From sequence record NC_041994.1: a stretch of DNA of 64,000 nt. The stretch is one strand, 5' to 3'. Every line of letters starts with the position of its first letter. The stretch's first letter is position 1. The position numbers and the translations under genes are program-made. This document shows, piece after piece, positions 1-28,712 of this stretch. The notes beneath the pieces were generated by a model, which did not search any database, had not been told where the DNA came from, and worked only from the letters and a program-made list of their open reading frames with translations.

Positions 1-1
1 G

Positions 2-3000
2 AAGTCCTTTGACGATCTACGAGACGGGGTTTATTCCGCTGACGGTAACATGCTGGTTGATCCAGAAGACATCGCCAAGCTGGTAAACCGTGATGGCTCT
101 AAGCACACCGCTGCTAAGCGTCGTGGCTTCCTGCGCAAACTCGGCAAGAAGATTCTCGGTGCTCCGATGACAGGTGCGAAAGCCCTCGGTCGGATGTGGT
201 GGAAAGGGACCAAGGCCTACTACAAAGGCATGGGCAACATGATTGCCAAGAAGTTTGGCAAGGGTGTTGACAAAGCCGACAAATACAACGAAGGATGGCT
301 CACCCCAACCGACGGTATCCTCGGTCAAATCCTCGGTGTGCTGGACAAGCGACTGCCGAAGGAAGAGGCTAAGGATGGTAGCTGGCAGAAGAAGCTTGAA
401 GAAGCGGAAGCCGCAGCGAAAGCCAAGAAGGAAGGGAAGGGTCAGGCGAAGAAAGACAAACAGATGGCCGGTGGTGGTTTGCTGGCGGGTCTGAAGAACC
501 TCTTCGGTAAAGGCAAGAAGGATGAGGAGGAAGAGGACTCTGGTACCAGCATCAATATCGACGGTGGTGGTGGCGGTGAAGAGGATGGTAAGAAGAAGCG
601 CAAAGGTAAGAAGAAACCACCGGGTAAAATGCGTCGTGGGTGGAATAAGCTTGCCAATACCCGAGTAGGTAAAGGCGTCGGTCGCTTCGGCGGCAATGCC
701 TTGATGCGTGGCGGTGGCACAGCTATGCGTGGCTTGGGTACCGCAGCCCGTTTGGGCGCTGGTGCGTTGATGGGTGGTGTAGAGCTCGGTGCGCTGGGTG
801 GTCTGGCCAGTGGTGCTGCTACCATGGCGGGTACAGGCCTGTCGATGGCAGGTGGTGCACTGGCTACGGCAGGTACTGCGTTGCTCGGTGCGTTGGCGTC
901 TCCTGTCGTACTGGGTGCGTTGGCCGTCGGTGCTGTGGCTGCTGGTGGTTATTGGCTGTGGAACCGTTCCAAGAAAGCGGGTGGTGAATTCCGCGATCTT
1001 CGGATGCTGCAATACGGTATTGACTCCACAGGTGATAAGCTCAAGATCCTGGAACTCGAAGCTTACCTCGAACCTTACACGACCAAGTCGAACGATCCTC
1101 AACTCAATATCAAATCTACCGATCCGAAGAAGATCTTCGAGATCCTGGACATCGATCCAAGCGAACCTGAAGAAGTAATTCGGATGGCGACCTGGATTGA
1201 CAAGCGCTTTAAGCCAGTGTACTGCACCTGGATGCGCGCAATGTTCAACCTCACGCCACATGGTACGCTTATCAACGAACTCGAAGATAAGCTGCCGGAC
1301 GAAGCCAAGTACGACTTCTTCACTTACGTGAAAGCCGTACCGACGCAAGTCTACGCTGAGATGGTCAACCCGCTTGATGAGGACCCACTGGAAGTCGATC
1401 CAGCCGACATCAACGAGATGGTCACTGAGCTCATCGACAAATACCGCGACAAAGCGAAGAAGAAGGACGAAGGCAAAACCGGCGATACCAAAACCGAAGG
1501 TGGTGTACAACCTAAAACCGCAGGTGGGGAAGATACCAAGGCGGTGAAGGAAGGCGAAGCCAAAGGGGAGATCAAAGGAGGTCTTTGGTCTGGGATCAAG
1601 GATGGACTGAAAAGTGTCATCCCGGGTCTGGGTATTGCGTCTGCTGTAGGTGGGTTGATCTCGAAAGCCAAGGAAGGTTGGCTGGGTGATCTCATGGGCA
1701 GTCTGTCCGGTGGTGCCAGCGTGCTGGCTTCTGCTGGATTGCTCGGTGGTCTGGTACTGACCAGTGCGGTGGCGATTGCCTCCGTATTTAAAGCCGACAA
1801 GCTGACCACACTGCAAGCAGTTCGTGTTCGCGCATACGGCAAGATGTCTCTGGACGAGAAAACCATCTCGGGCCTGTTTGAGTCTGAAGCCAAACTCTAC
1901 GAATGGATCAAGTTCACCTCGGATGGCCAAGCCTACTTCGACGGTAACTTGGACCTGCTCATCAACTCGATGGGTAAGATCTTCGGTGTTGACGTCACCG
2001 ATGCCAACTCTCGTAAAGCACAAGAATTCACTCGCTGGATTCTGCAACGTTTCGTTCCTGTCGCCCTGTCTTACTTTGCTGCCATCAAACAGCAGGGACA
2101 GTCAGTTACCCCTAACCGGGTAGAGTCGGCGTTTGCGGATGATGCGAAGCTCGCTGTGGCTAACGCAGTGATGACCGCTACCTACGAGCTGAATGGCGAG
2201 AAGATCAGTGTCTGGAAGGCGTTCACCTTCTTCAACAACGGCACAGCAGACTTGGGTGCTCTGAAGGCTTCGGCTGAGAAAGAGATCGCCACCCTTAAAG
2301 AGGCTGCTGAGAAAGCCAAGCTGGCTTCACCGGGTACTTCTGTTAAAGAGCAGGAGAACCAAGAGAAGTCTCAGCAAAAGACAACTGCTGAAAAGATCAT
2401 GGAAGGGGCCAAAGGTCTCGGCGGATCTATCAAGGACTCGATCTCTAGCTTCGCATCGGGGGTCGCTGACTCCGTTGGTGGTGCGGTTAGTAAGGTCAAG
2501 GACTTCTTCGGCATGGGTGGCGACGATAAGGCTAACGCCCCGGCGCCTGCCAACTCGGCATACAGCACCGCCTATACCCCAGGCGGCGCACTTGAACAGA
2601 AGGGTAGTTCGTACTCGACGTTCGCAGAAGGTAATGGTGGACAGTGGACATCGATCCCACTGCCGAAGTCTAAAACGCGGGAAGGTGCAATGCCTACCCT
2701 GCTTGCTGTGCAGGCAATGACCGGTGTTGATGCAGAGATCCTGGCGACGTTCGCGTCCATGGAATCGAACTTCGACTACTCGGTTAAAGCGAAGACGTCT
2801 TCGGCTACGGGTTGGTTCCAGTTCATCAACTCCACTTGGGATGGCATGATTTCCAAGTACGGTTCTAAGTACGGTATCCCACCGGACAACAAAGACCGTT
2901 ACCTGCGTACGGACCCTCGGATCAACGCCTTGATGGGGGCGGAGTTCATTAAGGGTAACTACAAGATCCTGGCTGCATCGTTGGGTCGTGCACCGACCGA

Positions 3001-3847
3001 CACGGATCTGTACTTCGCTCACTTCTTAGGCCCAGTCACGGCAGCGGGTTTCCTTAAACGCGACCGTAACGCGATTGCAGCCAGTCTGTACCCAACTCAG
3101 GCTGCTGCTAACCGCTCGATCTTCTACAAGCCTACCGGTCAGCCTCGTACGATCGGTGAAGTCTACGAGATCTTCGATGGCAAGGTTCGTAAACACCGTA
3201 AGGGTGGTGCAGGTAATGCGGTTGGTATCACACCTATCGACGGTGGCGCTGGTCAAGCTGCGGCGGATCAGAAAGCACAATCGGCGGGTATGACCGCAGA
3301 CATGAAACCTGTGGATCAAGGCGTCAACGGTGAGGTTGGGAAACATCAACCTCAGGGTAACCCGAATGATTCCTTGTCCATGGCTGCCGACAAGGCAGCA
3401 GCCCCAATGCGAGTGGGTGATCCAACACAAGGTGGTGGTACTGGCGCGCAAGGCGCTGGTGCGGCGGGAGGAGCAGGCGCAGCTACTACAGCAAGCGATG
3501 GCAGTTCTCCAACCGTTACGTCGGGCCAGCAATCGCCGGATCGACAAGCAGCACTGCAAGATGCGATGGTCAAAGCACAGGCGCAAGACCGTGCAGCCAC
3601 CGAACAGAACCAACAGCGTCAGCAACTGGCGCAGTCGAATCAACAGGTTCTCACTGATCAACTTACCACTCAGCAAGAGATGCGCGATCTCTTGAAGACA
3701 CTGGTCAAGAACATGGGTTCGCCCGTGGCTCCAGCACCAGCGGCTCCGGCGGCTCCAGCTTCGTCGGGTAATGATATGGGTAAAAATACAGCGCAGGCTG
3801 AACGGCGCGCGGGCAATGCCCCAACGCCAGTTTCATTCAAGCGATAG
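2..3847 (+). CDS. Large tail-associated lytic transglycosylase / tape-measure-like virion protein (phiKZ gp181-like), 5'-truncated by the window edge
   Basis: The frame is open from base 2 (KSFDDLRDGVYSADGN-MLVD...), so the true start is upstream. A C-terminal SLT domain at about 2700-3200 has the catalytic Glu in FASMESNF, followed by SSATGWFQF, DPRINALMGAE and LYFAHFLG. Long Gly/Ala- and Lys-rich tracts and hydrophobic segments are present. Confidence 0.85.
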   Translation, partial: KSFDDLRDGVYSADGNMLVDPEDIAKLVNRDGSKHTAAKRRGFLRKLGKKILGAPMTGAKALGRMWWKGTKAYYKGMGNMIAKKFGKGVDKADKYNEGWLTPTDGILGQILGVLDKRLPKEEAKDGSWQKKLEEAEAAAKAKKEGKGQAKKDKQMAGGGLLAGLKNLFGKGKKDEEEEDSGTSINIDGGGGGEEDGKKKRKGKKKPPGKMRRGWNKLANTRVGKGVGRFGGNALMRGGGTAMRGLGTAARLGAGALMGGVELGALGGLASGAATMAGTGLSMAGGALATAGTALLGALASPVVLGALAVGAVAAGGYWLWNRSKKAGGEFRDLRMLQYGIDSTGDKLKILELEAYLEPYTTKSNDPQLNIKSTDPKKIFEILDIDPSEPEEVIRMATWIDKRFKPVYCTWMRAMFNLTPHGTLINELEDKLPDEAKYDFFTYVKAVPTQVYAEMVNPLDEDPLEVDPADINEMVTELIDKYRDKAKKKDEGKTGDTKTEGGVQPKTAGGEDTKAVKEGEAKGEIKGGLWSGIKDGLKSVIPGLGIASAVGGLISKAKEGWLGDLMGSLSGGASVLASAGLLGGLVLTSAVAIASVFKADKLTTLQAVRVRAYGKMSLDEKTISGLFESEAKLYEWIKFTSDGQAYFDGNLDLLINSMGKIFGVDVTDANSRKAQEFTRWILQRFVPVALSYFAAIKQQGQSVTPNRVESAFADDAKLAVANAVMTATYELNGEKISVWKAFTFFNNGTADLGALKASAEKEIATLKEAAEKAKLASPGTSVKEQENQEKSQQKTTAEKIMEGAKGLGGSIKDSISSFASGVADSVGGAVSKVKDFFGMGGDDKANAPAPANSAYSTAYTPGGALEQKGSSYSTFAEGNGGQWTSIPLPKSKTREGAMPTLLAVQAMTGVDAEILATFASMESNFDYSVKAKTSSATGWFQFINSTWDGMISKYGSKYGIPPDNKDRYLRTDPRINALMGAEFIKGNYKILAASLGRAPTDTDLYFAHFLGPVTAAGFLKRDRNAIAASLYPTQAAANRSIFYKPTGQPRTIGEVYEIFDGKVRKHRKGGAGNAVGITPIDGGAGQAAADQKAQSAGMTADMKPVDQGVNGEVGKHQPQGNPNDSLSMAADKAAAPMRVGDPTQGGGTGAQGAGAAGGAGAATTASDGSSPTVTSGQQSPDRQAALQDAMVKAQAQDRAATEQNQQRQQLAQSNQQVLTDQLTTQQEMRDLLKTLVKNMGSPVAPAPAAPAAPASSGNDMGKNTAQAERRAGNAPTPVSFKR

Positions 3848-3900: not shown

Positions 3901-5874
3901 ATGGCCGCAATCGATCGTGGTGGCATTTGGTTACGCCACGCATTCCTTGTCCCGACCGACAGCAGCGCCAAGTCGTACGGTAGTGGTACCAAACGTCGCA
4001 ACGCCACGTCGGCTGCTTTTAAATTCACGAACACTTCACTGGGTGGCAACTACGCCATCAACAACCCACCGCAATTCACCCGGTTCTGTGACATCCGTCA
4101 CCCCGGTCGTGGACGTACACGGGAGCAATCCAAGTACGGCATGGGTCGTTACTACAGTGAGGCGATCGACGATACCCGTGACGAGATTCATATCACGGTA
4201 GGGGTTCCACGCTTCTCTAGCTGGACCAGTTTCTTCGCCAACTTCTATGACCGTCACGCTGCTTTGCTGGCGAACACCGGTCGTACTACCGATGCCTGGT
4301 TTGAACTGGGTAACATCGGCGGGCATTTGGTAACACTCCCGTTCCAACCGATCATCATCGGGGTGACGGGCGTCAACCGGGTAATGAACTTCCTCTCGAA
4401 GTCTCAACCTTCGAAGTGGTATTACTTCAAACCGACCATGCATGCGTACTGGTCGGCGGTTAACACCATCGCCAACGAATTCGCAATTGGACTGGGGATC
4501 ATTCCTCGTGTCTTGTCTGGTGGTCAGGAAGAGATGGCTGATCCGGGTAACACCGTGACAGCGGCTGACCGCGAACGTTTCCACAAGATGTTCCCTGACC
4601 TGTTCCGTAAGGACGGTTCGATCGACATCATGGCATTGAGTCTGCGCACACAGCGTATGTCCAACGCCTCGCAAGACAACTTCCGCAAGTTGAATGCTGC
4701 CGCAACCAGTGTGGAGCAATTACGAGCAGAAGTAGAGAAGTACGCTCAAACAACGCCTACCGACCCGAACCCTGGGGTGGATGCGAGATCGTACTTCTTG
4801 GACTACATCAAGAACGAGAAGCCGCAGGGTGATTTAACGGCTAACGAATCCTTCTCCAGCTGGAGTGAGCTTTCCAACGTCTACAGCTTTATCCGAGCTG
4901 CACAGTACGACGGTAGCCAGTTCATCACACTGCGGGTGAACCATCAGGGTACCGTATCGGAATCCTTCAGCAACCAGACTGAACAAGTCGGGGTAGCCTC
5001 TCAACTGAACACCAAGGTTAAGGAAGGTCGTTCGGCCAGCTTTGACTTCATGGGTGGTAACATCACAGACGTGGTGGGTTCGGTGTTCCAAGGCATCAAG
5101 TCGGTAGCGGCTGGTGTACTGAACTCGGTGAACGCATCCGGTGTGGCAGTATTGACCGGTGCTGCGTTTGTTGACGTGCCTGAGATGTGGTCGGGTTCTT
5201 CGGCTAACCTCCCTACAGCTGAATACACGGTTCCGTTGCCTTGTGCGTACGGTAACGTGATGTCCCGCTTTATCAACATGTACGTACCGCTGGCGATGAT
5301 TATCCCTCTGGGATTGCCACTGTCGGCAGGTCGTTCGGCTTACACCTCTCCCTTCATCTGTCAGGTCTTCCAAAAAGGCCGTGTACAGAAGCAGCTTGCC
5401 ATCGTCGATACGATCACCATTACCCGCGGTACTGGTAATGTGGGTTTCAACGCCGAGAAGCACATGCTGGGTTGTGAAGTCTCGATTAGCTTCAAAGACC
5501 TTTCCAGTGTTATGCACATCCCGATCAAGGGTGGCTTTGCCGACGGTTCGTGGCTGGACACTGCGGTTAAAGGTACGGCTGTGTTAGTAGGTGAGACCGT
5601 TGGTGGCGACACCGGCGAGATGGTTGCACACATGGCCACTAACGGCGCAGTGTGGGACGAACAGAGCCTGTTTCAAGATTATGTTTCAACGTTGACATCG
5701 CAGTCATTTGCTGACACGTATTACGTGGGCAACCGGTTGAATCTGAATGTGACGCGTGCTATGCAGAGTTTCACCAACTGGCGTAGTCCGTCCAACTTCC
5801 TGTCGTGGGCACTCGACGGGGATATCGCGCGGTCGCTTTCCGCATTTGCACAAACCACTGACCGATTCCAATAA
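3901..5874 (+). CDS. Probable virion (tail/baseplate) structural protein, phiKZ gp182-like by synteny
   Basis: 657-aa ORF with phage-like codon usage directly after the gp181-like gene. Beta-rich C-terminal part ([11 protein letters not shown]...EVSISFKDL). The product call rests on recalled synteny. Confidence 0.55.
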
Positions 5875-5880
5875 CGGAGC

Positions 5881-6135
5881 ATGAAAATGAAACAAGCAGT
5901 CCTGAAGTTCCTCTTGCGACAGACCTTGAGTCTGGTTCTCGCTAACCGCCGTACCGCCACCTTGGCAGTCGGCCGTGCCGAAGCCAGCTATCAGGGTGGT
6001 GACAAGCCATTCGTACGCCGTGGCAATGTGTATCGCTTTATCAAAGAGAACGCACCTGCCGGCACCCCGAAGTATTTGCTGGACGTTGGCACCGAAGCTG
6101 CTCAAGCTTTGGACGAGCTGTCGCGCAGCAAATAA
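5881..6135 (+). CDS. Hypothetical protein (84 aa)
   Basis: GGAG Shine-Dalgarno (SD) just upstream; tightly follows the previous gene. Confidence 0.6.
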   Translation: MKMKQAVLKFLLRQTLSLVLANRRTATLAVGRAEASYQGGDKPFVRRGNVYRFIKENAPAGTPKYLLDVGTEAAQALDELSRSK

Positions 6136-6146
6136 ACACCCACGCG

Positions 6147-6189
6147 GCGAAGGGTATAGGGGCAACCCTGTACTCTTCGCTCTTATGCC
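6147..6189 (+). terminator. Hairpin-TATGCC gene-boundary element
   Basis: GCGAAGGGTATAGGG-gcaa-CCCTGTACTCTTCGC then TCTTATGCC. Confidence 0.6.
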
Positions 6190-6205
6190 TTAAAAGGAAT
6201 GTGAG

Positions 6206-6610
6206 ATGACTGAAGCAATGAAGTGGCTCGAACAGAATGGGCCTGAAACCGTGAAGCCTACCAAGCTGACGTGGGAACGTGGTCCGATCGATCCGGAGTC
6301 GGGTGTGTCGGCTATGTACATGGTCGAGGGGATGGATTACACCAACAATCCTTCGGCACAAGCCGGTATGCCCAACGAGTTATTGATCCTGTTCCAATCG
6401 GGTATCGTCCCGGAGAACGGCATCAATGGCGTAACGCCTGAGATCCTGCTGGAAATCCTGATTGACCGCTTTGAAGGTTATCAGTCCGGTAACTTTGCGT
6501 GTGAAGAAAATGACGCAGCGCTTACTGGTATGCGTGATGCACTGGCAGCGATCCAACGCCGCCGAGCAGAACGCGCAGAGCGTGGTGTGCTGAACACCAT
6601 GCAGAAGTGA
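6206..6610 (+). CDS. tad1: Tad1-family anti-defence sponge protein (Thoeris anti-defence 1-like)
   Basis: The C-terminal half (LFQSG...NGVTPEILLEILIDRFEGYQSGNFACEENDAAL...RRRAERAERGVLNTMQK) aligns by eye with the recalled Tad1 pattern FQxG...GV..DLLEI..DRL..FQ.G.F..REN..AL...EAL.W..RR..DR..R.V.GT. Confidence 0.75.
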   Translation: MTEAMKWLEQNGPETVKPTKLTWERGPIDPESGVSAMYMVEGMDYTNNPSAQAGMPNELLILFQSGIVPENGINGVTPEILLEILIDRFEGYQSGNFACEENDAALTGMRDALAAIQRRRAERAERGVLNTMQK

Positions 6611-7595: not shown

Positions 7596-9044
7596 ATGTC
7601 TGAAGTTAAAATGGGTCACCTGGTAGTTCTCGAAGGTAACAACGGCGTAGGTAAAACTGCCCAGATGGAATTGCAAGCAGAGCGTCTGCGCGCTGCTGGC
7701 CGTGACGTCGTTATCGTTGCTGAACCGGGTGGTTCTGACCTGGGCGTGGCACTGCGCAAGATCCTGAAGGACCAGCGCGACATCAAACTGAACTACACCA
7801 CCGAACTGCTGCTGTTCGGCGCGCAGCGTGACGACATGTACCGCAAGGTCATCCGTCCTGCGCTGGATGCAGGCAAAGTGGTTCTGGCCGACCGTGGCTA
7901 CTTCTCCACCTACGCTTTCCAAGTGCACCCGCACGTGGAAGAGAACGGCATTGTGCTGCACGTGTTCAACGCCATGACCGGCATGAACATGCAACACCTG
8001 GGCAACGTTCCGCCGATCGTCATGAACATCGAAGTGCCAGAAGACGTTCGTCTGGCTCGTCTGGCTGCTGCCGGTGAACAGCGTGAAGAAGACGCGTTCG
8101 AAACCGATCGCTCTCCTGCGTACCTGGCCAAGGTTGCTGAAGGCTACAACATCCTGAAGCAACAACCGGGCGTGATGACCTTCGACGGTACCAAGGACAT
8201 CGACGAGCTGGCCGACCTGATCTTCGATCAAATCCAGGTCTGCATCAACCAGCGTGAGCAAGAAGCGCAGATCCTGGCTGAACAAACCGAAGAGCGTAAC
8301 CGTCTGCGTGCCGAAGCAGAAGAACGCGGTGAAGATCCAGACGCCGCTCAGCGCCTGGCTGCTGAAGAAGCTGCGAAGGCCAACGAGATCCAGGGCCTGA
8401 CGCTGGAAGAGATGGAAGATGAAATCAACAAGACCATCAACTTCCACGCTCAAGAACTGCTGGCTCGCATCGGTGGTGACTTCTCGCCGCACAAGGCTGA
8501 ATTCGATGCTCACGTTGTGACCCTGCGCAAGTGGGTTCGTTCGCACATCAACGAAGAGCGCGAGAAAGAAGTTCAGCTGACCGCTATGCAATCGCAACAG
8601 CGCGTTATGCAGATCTCCAGCAACATCGGCACCATGCTCGGCGGCTTCATGACTCTGATCAACATCGGCGAAATGGTCACCAAGCTGGAAGCAGACGGCC
8701 AAGTCCTGGACGTCGATCTGACCGCAGTCGAAGTACCGGTTGCTCCACCTGCTGACGAAGCGGGTGAGCAGGCTGAAGCCGCATTCGCTGAAGCAAGCGA
8801 TGCTGACGAAGCTCCAGCGTACGGCCGTGGCGAAACCCCAGTGCTGCAACACATCGACGAATCCGGCCATTACGCTGAAGGCCAAGCGCCGAAGGCAGAA
8901 GAAGCCGGTCTGGAAATGCGCGGCGGTGACACCGGCGGCGTACAGGTTGATGAAGCCAGCTTCAAGTCCGAAGTTGCTCCAGCGGCCGAAGCCAGCTACC
9001 CAGCCGAAGGTTCGCCTGCTGCGAGCGAAGCTAGCTCGCTGTAA
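7596..9044 (+). CDS. tmk: Thymidylate (dTMP) kinase with a long acidic C-terminal extension
   Basis: P-loop LEGNNGVGKT, AEPGGS, ELLLFGAQR, VLADRGYFSTYAFQ. AAGGGA SD before ATG 7596; the ORF-track start at 7464 runs through the terminator. Confidence 0.9.
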   Translation: MSEVKMGHLVVLEGNNGVGKTAQMELQAERLRAAGRDVVIVAEPGGSDLGVALRKILKDQRDIKLNYTTELLLFGAQRDDMYRKVIRPALDAGKVVLADRGYFSTYAFQVHPHVEENGIVLHVFNAMTGMNMQHLGNVPPIVMNIEVPEDVRLARLAAAGEQREEDAFETDRSPAYLAKVAEGYNILKQQPGVMTFDGTKDIDELADLIFDQIQVCINQREQEAQILAEQTEERNRLRAEAEERGEDPDAAQRLAAEEAAKANEIQGLTLEEMEDEINKTINFHAQELLARIGGDFSPHKAEFDAHVVTLRKWVRSHINEEREKEVQLTAMQSQQRVMQISSNIGTMLGGFMTLINIGEMVTKLEADGQVLDVDLTAVEVPVAPPADEAGEQAEAAFAEASDADEAPAYGRGETPVLQHIDESGHYAEGQAPKAEEAGLEMRGGDTGGVQVDEASFKSEVAPAAEASYPAEGSPAASEASSL

Positions 9045-12380: not shown

Positions 12381-12466
12381 GGGTAGATACGGAAGCGGCT
12401 CAAACCGGTCAGACTGTAAATCTGATGTCTACGACTTCGCAGGTTCGAATCCTGCTCTGCCCACCA
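12381..12466 (+). tRNA. tRNA-Tyr (GTA)
   Basis: Acceptor GGGTAGA/TCTGCCC, anticodon arm TCAGA-CTGTAAA-TCTGA, long variable arm, GGTTCGAATCC, encoded CCA. Confidence 0.95.
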
Positions 12467-12469
12467 AAC

Positions 12470-12546
12470 GTCGATGTAGCTCAGATGGTTAGAGTACCGG
12501 CCTGTCACGCCGGGGGTCGAGGGTTCGAAACCCTTCATCGACGCCA
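12470..12546 (+). tRNA. tRNA-Asp (GTC)
   Basis: Acceptor GTCGATG/CATCGAC, anticodon arm CCGGC-CTGTCAC-GCCGG, GGTTCGAAACC, encoded CCA. Confidence 0.95.
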
Positions 12547-12758
12547 TATTCTTGTTTTATGCACAGTTCTCAAGCGAGTGGTGAGACGGTCGAAAGATTG
12601 CCTGGGTAACTCTAAAACCAGGACGGTGCGCCAGTCATCCCTAGTCCGGGTGAATGTGGTGGGTGGCTTCCTCCTTCGGGATAGCCAGAGCGGGCGCCTA
12701 CTCGGGAAACCGACCCTGCGCCGCCGATGGTAAGACGGTGGCACATTTCTTCCGCAAT
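12547..12758 (+). ncRNA. Candidate structured RNA inside the tRNA cluster
   Basis: GAAA and cUUCGg tetraloop hairpins and a long-range AATGTG/CACATT pairing; no credible ORF. Confidence 0.4.
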
Positions 12759-12834
12759 TCCAGCATATCTCAGTTGGTAGAGAACACGGCTGTTAACCGT
12801 GGTGTCCCTGGTTCGAGTCCAGGTGCTGGAGCCA
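12759..12834 (+). tRNA. tRNA-Asn (GTT)
   Basis: Acceptor TCCAGCA/TGCTGGA, anticodon arm CACGG-CTGTTAA-CCGTG, GGTTCGAGTCC, encoded CCA. Confidence 0.95.
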
Positions 12835-28111: not shown

Positions 28112-28712
28112 CCAGTACGAGGAAACCTACCGGTCGCTGCCAGAGTTTCTCGATGCGTGGAAGGACTACGACATCGACCTCAACCGGATTATCCGCTGGG
28201 ATATCAAAGAGGTGAAGGAAGACTTCCCTAAACCGGAGGATATGGAAGAACGTGACTACGAACAATTCGGTCCATGGGGCACTCAATACGCTATGCTGCA
28301 CTTCGTAGCGCCGCGTAAGGGCCACACGTTCACGAACCGTATCCTGAACCTGAAATCGGGTGATATCCCACGTTTGTTTACGCTGCTCAAGAAACATTGG
28401 GACCACACGCAGATGCTCTGGGACCCACTGCCCAACATTGAGTACATCCCACCCTCTACGCCGCGTAGCCGTTTCGTGTCGAAGGTACGTGCCATTACTG
28501 ACATGTACACCATCGTCCCGTCTGGTGATCCTGAACACATCCGTAATAAAAGCAACGAGCGTGTGGTCGGTGCTGTGCGTGACGTGCTGGGGTTGATTGA
28601 TGACAGCTATATACTGCTGGAACAACCAGAGCACGACGACGTACCACTGGACCCGGGCTTGAACATCGCGGGGGAATTAGCCAAGACTTACTTTGATGAG
28701 ATCAACTCATGA
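28011..28712 (+). CDS. Two-domain protein: DHPYY-type phage domain plus C-terminal INN module
   Basis: GAGG SD. N-terminal DHPYY...DLNRIIRWD...APRKG; C-terminal VLGLIDDSYILL...[16 protein letters not shown]. Confidence 0.8.
   Translation: MSTVAIEHRLKETIATPTDLLKALSVDHPYYHSSQYEETYRSLPEFLDAWKDYDIDLNRIIRWDIKEVKEDFPKPEDMEERDYEQFGPWGTQYAMLHFVAPRKGHTFTNRILNLKSGDIPRLFTLLKKHWDHTQMLWDPLPNIEYIPPSTPRSRFVSKVRAITDMYTIVPSGDPEHIRNKSNERVVGAVRDVLGLIDDSYILLEQPEHDDVPLDPGLNIAGELAKTYFDEINS

Follow-up and report, generated by a model that had tools for sequence, protein, structure and literature searches.

The ligand sites of Tad1 sponge proteins have been defined by crystal structures and mutagenesis (Li et al. 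preprint). In CbTad1, which comes from a Clostridium botulinum prophage (PDB 7UAV, 7UAW, 8SMD and 8KBE-8KBH), gcADPR and cyclic dinucleotides bind a single pocket that involves F82, N92, R109 and R113, over which a C-terminal segment with L119 closes as a lid. The central pocket of the Tad1 hexamer is the binding site of cyclic trinucleotides, where R90 and T97 of CbTad1 hold the ligand. Substitutions at this site are found in 6% of Tad1 homologs, and the spectra of cyclic dinucleotides also vary between homologs (Li et al. preprint). The cyclic-trinucleotide site represents a second activity of Tad1 and is not a criterion for membership in the family. Acb2 (anti-CBASS 2) has in common with Tad1 the sponge mechanism, a helical hairpin, and the Pfam entry PF24729, and Tad1 differs from Acb2 by an additional N-terminal beta-sheet.

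Among jumbo phages, the relevant protein is gp184 of phiKZ. In the phiKZ capsid paper, it is one of the minor capsid proteins and belongs to the inner vertex-binding complex; the head protease gp175 cleaves it, and the capsid-bound piece modelled there consists mainly of beta-strands. According to a later preprint, gp184 has its N-terminus wedged into the capsid, its C-terminus becomes free and is injected, and the protein is not needed for growth of phiKZ. Injection has been demonstrated by western blot. In a review and a preprint that cite Li et al. (Nature 2024), gp184 is called a Tad1 that blocks CBASS and Thoeris, and it is presented there as the only jumbo-phage anti-defence protein described so far. 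Its counterpart in phage 201phi2-1, gp280, has been detected in virions by mass spectrometry.

Here, we consider the gene NOXIFER_200 of Pseudomonas phage Noxifer, whose host is P. fluorescens SBW25. The window is a stretch of 64,000 nucleotides (sequence record NC_041994.1) with a sequence identical to that of the Noxifer record MF063068, and its base 1 corresponds to base 186001 of that record. An earlier note, made from the sequence alone, had proposed that positions 6206-6610 encode a Tad1-like sponge of immune signals in a nucleus-forming phage. Noxifervirus is placed taxonomically in the Chimalliviridae and the Noxifer genome has an annotated PhuZ gene, so the description as nucleus-forming is reasonable. 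The GenBank product name of NOXIFER_200 is ‘hypothetical protein’. Taken as a whole, the gene is best explained as encoding a Tad1-family sponge, which would sequester the signal of type I Thoeris as well as, probably, some CBASS cyclic dinucleotides, and we put the probability of this reading at about 0.85. The features of the locus are collected in Table 1.

Table 1. Features of the NOXIFER_200 locus, in window positions.
Feature	Positions	Strand	Description	Basis
NOXIFER_198	3901..5874	+	phiKZ gp182 counterpart	PHROG 3181; weaker match to virion structural protein family
NOXIFER_199	5887..6135	+	82-aa protein conserved in Noxifer-like phages	
RNA hairpin	6150..6177	+	12 bp, GNRA-type tetraloop; between NOXIFER_199 and NOXIFER_200	alignment, fold
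Shine-Dalgarno-like AGGA	6195..6198	+	7 nt 5' of the NOXIFER_200 ATG	sequence
NOXIFER_200, Tad1-family gene	6206..6610	+	ATG start, 134 aa + stop	ORF listing, GenBank CDS, Tad1 homology
N-terminal peptide, aa 1-14	6206..6247	+	MTEAMKWLEQNGPE; helix predicted at aa 3-11	AF2, alignment, comparison of N-termini
Antiparallel beta-sheet region, aa 21-63	6266..6394	+	strands 22-25, 37-41, 58-63	AF2 model, conservation
Two-helix hairpin (Acb2/Tad1 hairpin), aa 78-125	6437..6580	+		AF2 model, alignment, dN/dS
C-terminal ‘lid’ segment, aa 126-134	6581..6607	+	RGVLNTMQK	alignment to CbTad1

Membership in the Tad1 family

The proposal that NOXIFER_200 is a Tad1 is supported by sequence, predicted fold, the Pfam family of its relatives, and the conservation of pocket residues. 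The translation includes LFQSG, NGVTPEILLEILIDRFEGYQSGNFACEEN, ALAAI and RRRAERAERGVLNT, which are the peptide stretches quoted in the earlier note. When this translation was compared with the PDB using phmmer, the best match was phiKZ gp184 (8y6v chain I, E 8.8e-25), followed by CbTad1 chains 7uav, 8kbe, 8kbg and 8kbh (E ~2e-9, best 1.7e-9) and CmTad1 (8kbb, E 1.3e-8). Beyond gp184, the PDB sequence matches were to Tad1 entries only. Of 1.84 billion cluster representatives searched, 2,997 matched at E<=0.001. Given these numbers and the PDB E-values, the similarity to Tad1 is far beyond chance. CbTad1 is ~31% identical to NOXIFER_200. The founding member of the family, SBSphiJ7 Tad1 from a Bacillus phage, is set apart by description only, as it is encoded in a small genome and, unlike NOXIFER_200, has no link to a virion module. 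Bacillus phages account for 86 of the 167 records matched by NOXIFER_200 in tblastn.

Structure comparison leads to the same family. An AlphaFold2 model of the single chain, built with a 74-sequence alignment as input, has a pLDDT of 92 and a pTM of 0.81. From the N-terminus it comprises a short helix, three beta-strands and then a long hairpin of two helices (78-94 and 100-125), and the beta-sheet region closes with F63-Q64-x-G66, which is nearly invariant in relatives. The best 20 Foldseek matches of the model in the PDB are all Tad1 (E 8e-9 to 5e-6, TM 0.55-0.75), and the next match has an E of 0.65. The fold is shared with CbTad1 at a TM of about 0.7 (E 8e-9), and fold and hairpin are shared with CmTad1 (PDB 8KBB-8KBD; fold E 1.6e-7). 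Among the predicted viral structures of BFVD, the best match is a 230-aa protein, the same length as phiKZ gp184 (43% identity, TMq 0.82, rmsd 1.3 A); after it come proteins described as ‘Acb2/Tad1 hairpin domain-containing’.

Assignment to the Pfam family PF24729 (Acb2_Tad1_hairpin) rests on precomputed annotations of relatives that share 55-92% identity with NOXIFER_200. Pfam and NCBIfam scans of NOXIFER_200, its relatives and gp184 gave no match, and a Pfam-A hmmscan of the relatives annotated with PF24729 was empty even at E<=10. The negative Pfam result for NOXIFER_200 is therefore uninformative, as the same Pfam-A copy also fails to match the annotated relatives. Matches in PHROGs were confined to families 2428, 23843 and 22140, all of ‘unknown function’.

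The alignment to CbTad1 bears out the family motifs that the earlier note had named. The FQ.G.F...EN motif reads YQSGNFACEEN, and the R-x-x-x-R-x-x-R segment is represented by R119, R123 and R126. The deviations it had pointed out, ALAAI for ALxW and YQ for FQ, are real. The N-terminal extension is also present, but it adds no more than some 11-12 residues to the length of CbTad1, and these form a helix.

A six-frame search of the whole record, carried out piece by piece, revealed no second copy of Tad1, and NOXIFER_200 is the sole Tad1 gene of Noxifer. Its short form is recurrent. Eight metagenomic relatives have 134-136 aa, three contigs that carry such relatives have the same gene neighbourhood, and in a domain tree the Noxifer-like short forms fall into one clade, with the long-form phiKZ clade as its sister. 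Consequently, the short form in Noxifer is no accident. About half of the 159 Tad1-domain relatives compared exceed 150 aa, with a maximum of 442 aa. In many of these proteins, but not in all, the extra length lies in an N-terminal extension. In one relative of 198 aa that has a Tad1 domain (P0014), the alignment shows that some 50 N-terminal residues are strongly hydrophobic and resemble a transmembrane segment.

Correspondence to phiKZ gp184 and possible packaging

NOXIFER_200 is an ortholog of phiKZ gp184, the already published jumbo-phage Tad1, which is also its closest solved relative (BLASTP, 44% identity, E 6e-31, Noxifer residues 12-131 against gp184 residues 106-226). The two proteins come from phages of the same family, the Chimalliviridae. 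Both read CEEN, not C/S-R-E-N, at the cyclic-trinucleotide site, both have an ALxW motif without its Trp, and both carry an N-terminal x-W-L peptide. As in phiKZ, the gene follows counterparts of gp181-gp183 and precedes a thymidylate kinase gene. The gene order around NOXIFER_200 matches that of phiKZ from gp181, gp182, gp183 and gp184 to gp188 (thymidylate kinase), and also that of 201phi2-1 from gp276 through gp280 to gp287. The gene sits in the late virion module of the gp181-gp184 type, as gp184 does. The genes upstream include counterparts of gp181 (tail lysin) and gp182, and the placement after virion genes described in the earlier note is correct. As the counterpart of a published protein, NOXIFER_200 can be annotated soundly as Tad1, and it does not represent a new kind of system.

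The most obvious difference is length. NOXIFER_200 has 134 aa, compared with 230 aa in gp184 and 199 aa in 201phi2-1 gp280. In the alignment it lacks gp184 residues ~14-105, which comprise an acidic linker (~95 residues together with the wedge) and a Trp-rich beta-hairpin, and the SLE-13 protease motif of gp184 is also absent. The lid reads RGVLNT rather than QGTEGT, and T107, at which the Thr of Tad1 is kept, is Asn in gp184. NOXIFER_199 was considered as a separate gene for the missing N-terminal part and was rejected, since it resembles neither gp183 nor the N-terminal region of gp184.

Some neighbouring genes deserve comment. NOXIFER_197 (window positions 1-3847, + strand; ~2,300 aa) is annotated as ‘tail fiber protein’. 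Its ortholog on a related contig has a faint match to an SLT domain. On the basis of this match, its size and the gene order, NOXIFER_197 is the counterpart of the phiKZ tail-associated lysin gp181 and of the 201phi2-1 cell-puncturing device gp276, and the ‘tail fiber’ label is probably wrong. Downstream, NOXIFER_202 (7596-9044, + strand) encodes a thymidylate kinase of 482 aa, compared with 352 aa in phiKZ gp188. It has a Glu/Ala-rich C-terminal extension of more than 200 residues that gp188 lacks, and a sub-threshold Pfam match to Gad1 (E 0.026) that is probably compositional. A cluster of tRNA genes (Tyr, Asp, Asn) is annotated at ~12381-12834 (+ strand), about 6 kb downstream of NOXIFER_200.

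NOXIFER_200 is preceded by an RNA hairpin with a folding energy of -18.9 kcal/mol (z -4.0), which lies ~28 nt 5' of its start. The hairpin is also present in two Noxifer-like contigs (L004 and L012), where base changes leave the pairing intact. A role as a terminator, a processing element or an RNA-stability element that parts NOXIFER_200 from the upstream virion genes is possible. A scan of the + strand for sigma-70 promoters and intrinsic terminators, which is not built for phiKZ-type promoters, found nothing relevant. The intergenic sequence that flanks the hairpin also looks well conserved given the divergence of the genomes.

The x-W-L peptide is the part of the N-terminus that short and long forms have in common. 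Noxifer Tad1 starts with MTEAMKWLEQ, and in the alignment the short-form relatives have x-W-L-E. gp184 starts with MSKPNLEWLASLE, and 201phi2-1 gp280 contains ...GLTWAKGLE. Overall, an ‘x-W-L-E’ peptide is conserved in every short-form relative, and also in the long forms gp184, gp280, P0020 and P0028. A comparable feature is found in the inner-body or ejected proteins of phiKZ. gp93, gp94, gp95 and gp97 start with a peptide of 11-13 residues that ends in S-L-E, as does gp184 (loci L006, phiKZ 80000-112000, and L002:5686-5724), and gp93 is reported to be cut at SLE-13. The inner-body homologs of Noxifer, NOXIFER_93, 94 and 96, start with ...VSLE-14, ...VSQE-14 and ...KYLDQRSRVSNE-18, with S-x-E at 14-18; the N-terminus of the third of these reads ...KYLDQ...SNE-18. 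The peptide of gp93, gp94, gp95, gp97, gp184 and the Noxifer homologs could represent a common propeptide or a signal for head targeting. Judged by its sequence, the peptide of NOXIFER_200 suggests that the short Noxifer Tad1 retains a prohead-targeting peptide.

It is therefore conceivable that NOXIFER_200 is pre-packaged, with its N-terminal peptide sending it into the prohead together with the inner-body and ejection proteins, and that it is then injected as gp184 is. If it entered the cell with the DNA, the sponge would be present before expression of any phage gene. This possibility draws on the retention of the peptide across short and long Tad1 forms, on the S-L-E-ending peptides of phiKZ and the cut in gp93, on the similar start of the Noxifer inner-body homologs, and on the G-P-E-14 with which the NOXIFER_200 peptide ends. 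It also accords with the location of the gene in the late virion module, and with the injection of gp184 and the presence of gp280 in virions. Several observations weigh against it. The acidic linker and the beta-hairpin that make up the capsid wedge of gp184 are missing. GPE, as an instance of an S/A/G-x-E cleavage motif, is not a conserved motif in relatives P0001-P0008. A loose N-terminal ‘ejection-protein’ motif, written as a regular expression, matches about 2-3% of Noxifer ORFs by chance, too many of them unrelated for the motif to be more than a hint. Lastly, the conserved RNA hairpin parts NOXIFER_200 from the upstream virion genes. On balance, we regard pre-packaging as a tentative proposal, with somewhat less than an even chance of being correct. 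A more specific version is unlikely, though worth stating: the Noxifer-like Tad1 would have been stripped of the capsid wedge as well as of the pocket for cyclic trinucleotides, and the short N-terminal peptide alone would load it as a free ‘internal protein’.

Two other Noxifer proteins have an N-terminal motif of the same kind, basic-aromatic-aliphatic-acidic, as NOXIFER_200. These are NOXIFER_33 (record positions 28193-28570, - strand; MSSRWLDQ...) and the putative virion protein NOXIFER_133 (123639-124532, - strand; MSIKLKWVDR...).

Ligand pockets, selection and alternative functions

Residues of CbTad1 were mapped onto NOXIFER_200 by HMMER alignment, and the numbering was checked against the residues named by Li et al. 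In the pocket for gcADPR and cyclic dinucleotides, F82, N92, R109 and R113 correspond to Y92, N102, R119 and R123, all borne by the hairpin, so that three residues are identical and the aromatic one is Tyr. Among 164 aligned relatives, the aromatic column is Phe in 138 and Tyr in 20, and the Asn and the two Arg are found in 161, 162 and 158, respectively. L119 of the lid corresponds to L129; only 14 of the 164 relatives have Leu in this column. At the cyclic-trinucleotide site, T97 is kept as T107, whereas R90, which in CbTad1 also makes a hexamer contact, has become E100. Arg occupies this column in only 16 of the 164 relatives, and within the Noxifer clade it is E, P, A or S. W105 of CbTad1 is Ala.

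In comparison with an ortholog of 75% identity, dN/dS is 0.18 overall and 0.077 in the hairpin (aa 77-134). NOXIFER_200 is thus under strong purifying selection. Together with the columns in relatives, this indicates that the residues of the gcADPR/cyclic-dinucleotide pocket are kept and under selection, whereas the cyclic-trinucleotide site is not. Judging from the sequence, the functionally most telling deviation is the replacement of R90 by Glu100, which the earlier note had missed. Comparison with CmTad1 adds to this. Its T95 is kept in NOXIFER_200, but the residues of the hexamer and cyclic-trinucleotide set have diverged, with R88, K96, Q98, E99, M102, W103 and K106 at the hexamer interface replaced by E, G, R, D, A, A and R. 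Both the oligomer and its pockets could thus be different. The Glu in place of R90, the drift of this position within the clade, and the interface changes make a narrower ligand range likely.

The mechanism that best fits these observations is that of a sponge. NOXIFER_200 would oligomerise, and the type I Thoeris signal 1''-3' gcADPR (= 3'cADPR) would be sequestered in a pocket at the dimer interface, where some CBASS cyclic dinucleotides would probably be held as well. With the signal sequestered, the host effector would never be activated. Such a protein would protect the phage from abortive infection triggered by signalling, against which a nucleus that shields the DNA gives no cover. Binding of cyclic trinucleotides in the central hexamer pocket has probably been lost or changed, as the phosphate-binding Arg is Glu100 and the position drifts in the clade. 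Two features sit less easily with a sponge of the established kind, namely Tyr rather than Phe at the aromatic pocket position, and the changes at the hexamer interface.

These same features could be taken to mean that the fold has been kept but that another ligand is bound instead of gcADPR, such as another cADPR isomer, His-ADPR, N7-cADPR or 2',3'-c-di-AMP. The pocket would then have been retuned by the Tyr-for-Phe replacement, the CbTad1-like lid Leu, which is a minority residue, and the altered interface. There is precedent for shifts of specificity in sponge families, since 3'cADPR is a ligand of certain Acb2 homologs, and cUMP or N7-cADPR of certain Tad2 homologs, and Tad1 homologs themselves differ in their cyclic-dinucleotide spectra. 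However, the four core pocket residues show the same conservation as in Tad1 proteins with demonstrated gcADPR binding. Inhibition of type I Thoeris and CBASS was seen with the diverse Tad1 homologs assayed to date, and no new ligand classes were reported for Tad1. We consider this reading improbable.

Less probable by far is a purely structural role, in which NOXIFER_200 would be a minor capsid protein and not a sponge. Its best PDB sequence match is a protein in a capsid structure (8y6v), and gp184 is part of the phiKZ inner vertex-binding complex. Yet it is the N-terminus of gp184 that lies in the capsid, its capsid-bound part being mainly beta-strands, and the C-terminal part is released. 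NOXIFER_200 lacks the capsid-bound part, 8y6v is absent among the fold matches listed, the invariant residues form a ligand pocket and not a capsid interface, and gp184 is itself dispensable for growth. The structural reading was rejected on these grounds. Membership in Acb2 is scarcely credible and was also rejected: PF24729 does unite the helical hairpins of both families, but the PDB sequence matches are Tad1 only, the 50 PDB fold matches listed include 20 Tad1 chains and no Acb2 chain, and the N-terminal beta-sheet aligns with that of Tad1 (126 of 134 columns).

Implications for chimallivirus counter-defence

As an ortholog of a published jumbo-phage Tad1, NOXIFER_200 is of lower novelty than it would otherwise be, and it leaves the known picture of how Tad1 works unchanged. 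Nevertheless, a ‘hypothetical protein’ of Noxifer and of uncultured Noxifer-like jumbo phages becomes a well-supported predicted anti-Thoeris/anti-CBASS sponge. Moreover, Tad1 at one position in the genome is common to at least three chimallivirus lineages, those of phiKZ, 201phi2-1 and Noxifer.

The short form in Noxifer and the capsid-anchored form in phiKZ offer a natural comparison for asking whether it makes a difference to counter-defence that a sponge is packaged beforehand and injected. The same comparison could reveal the residues behind the cyclic-trinucleotide activity of Tad1. If the short N-terminal peptide alone does load Noxifer Tad1 into the head, it would constitute a minimal head-targeting signal for the ejected proteins of chimalliviruses, and an immune sponge would not need a structural role in the capsid in order to be delivered in advance.
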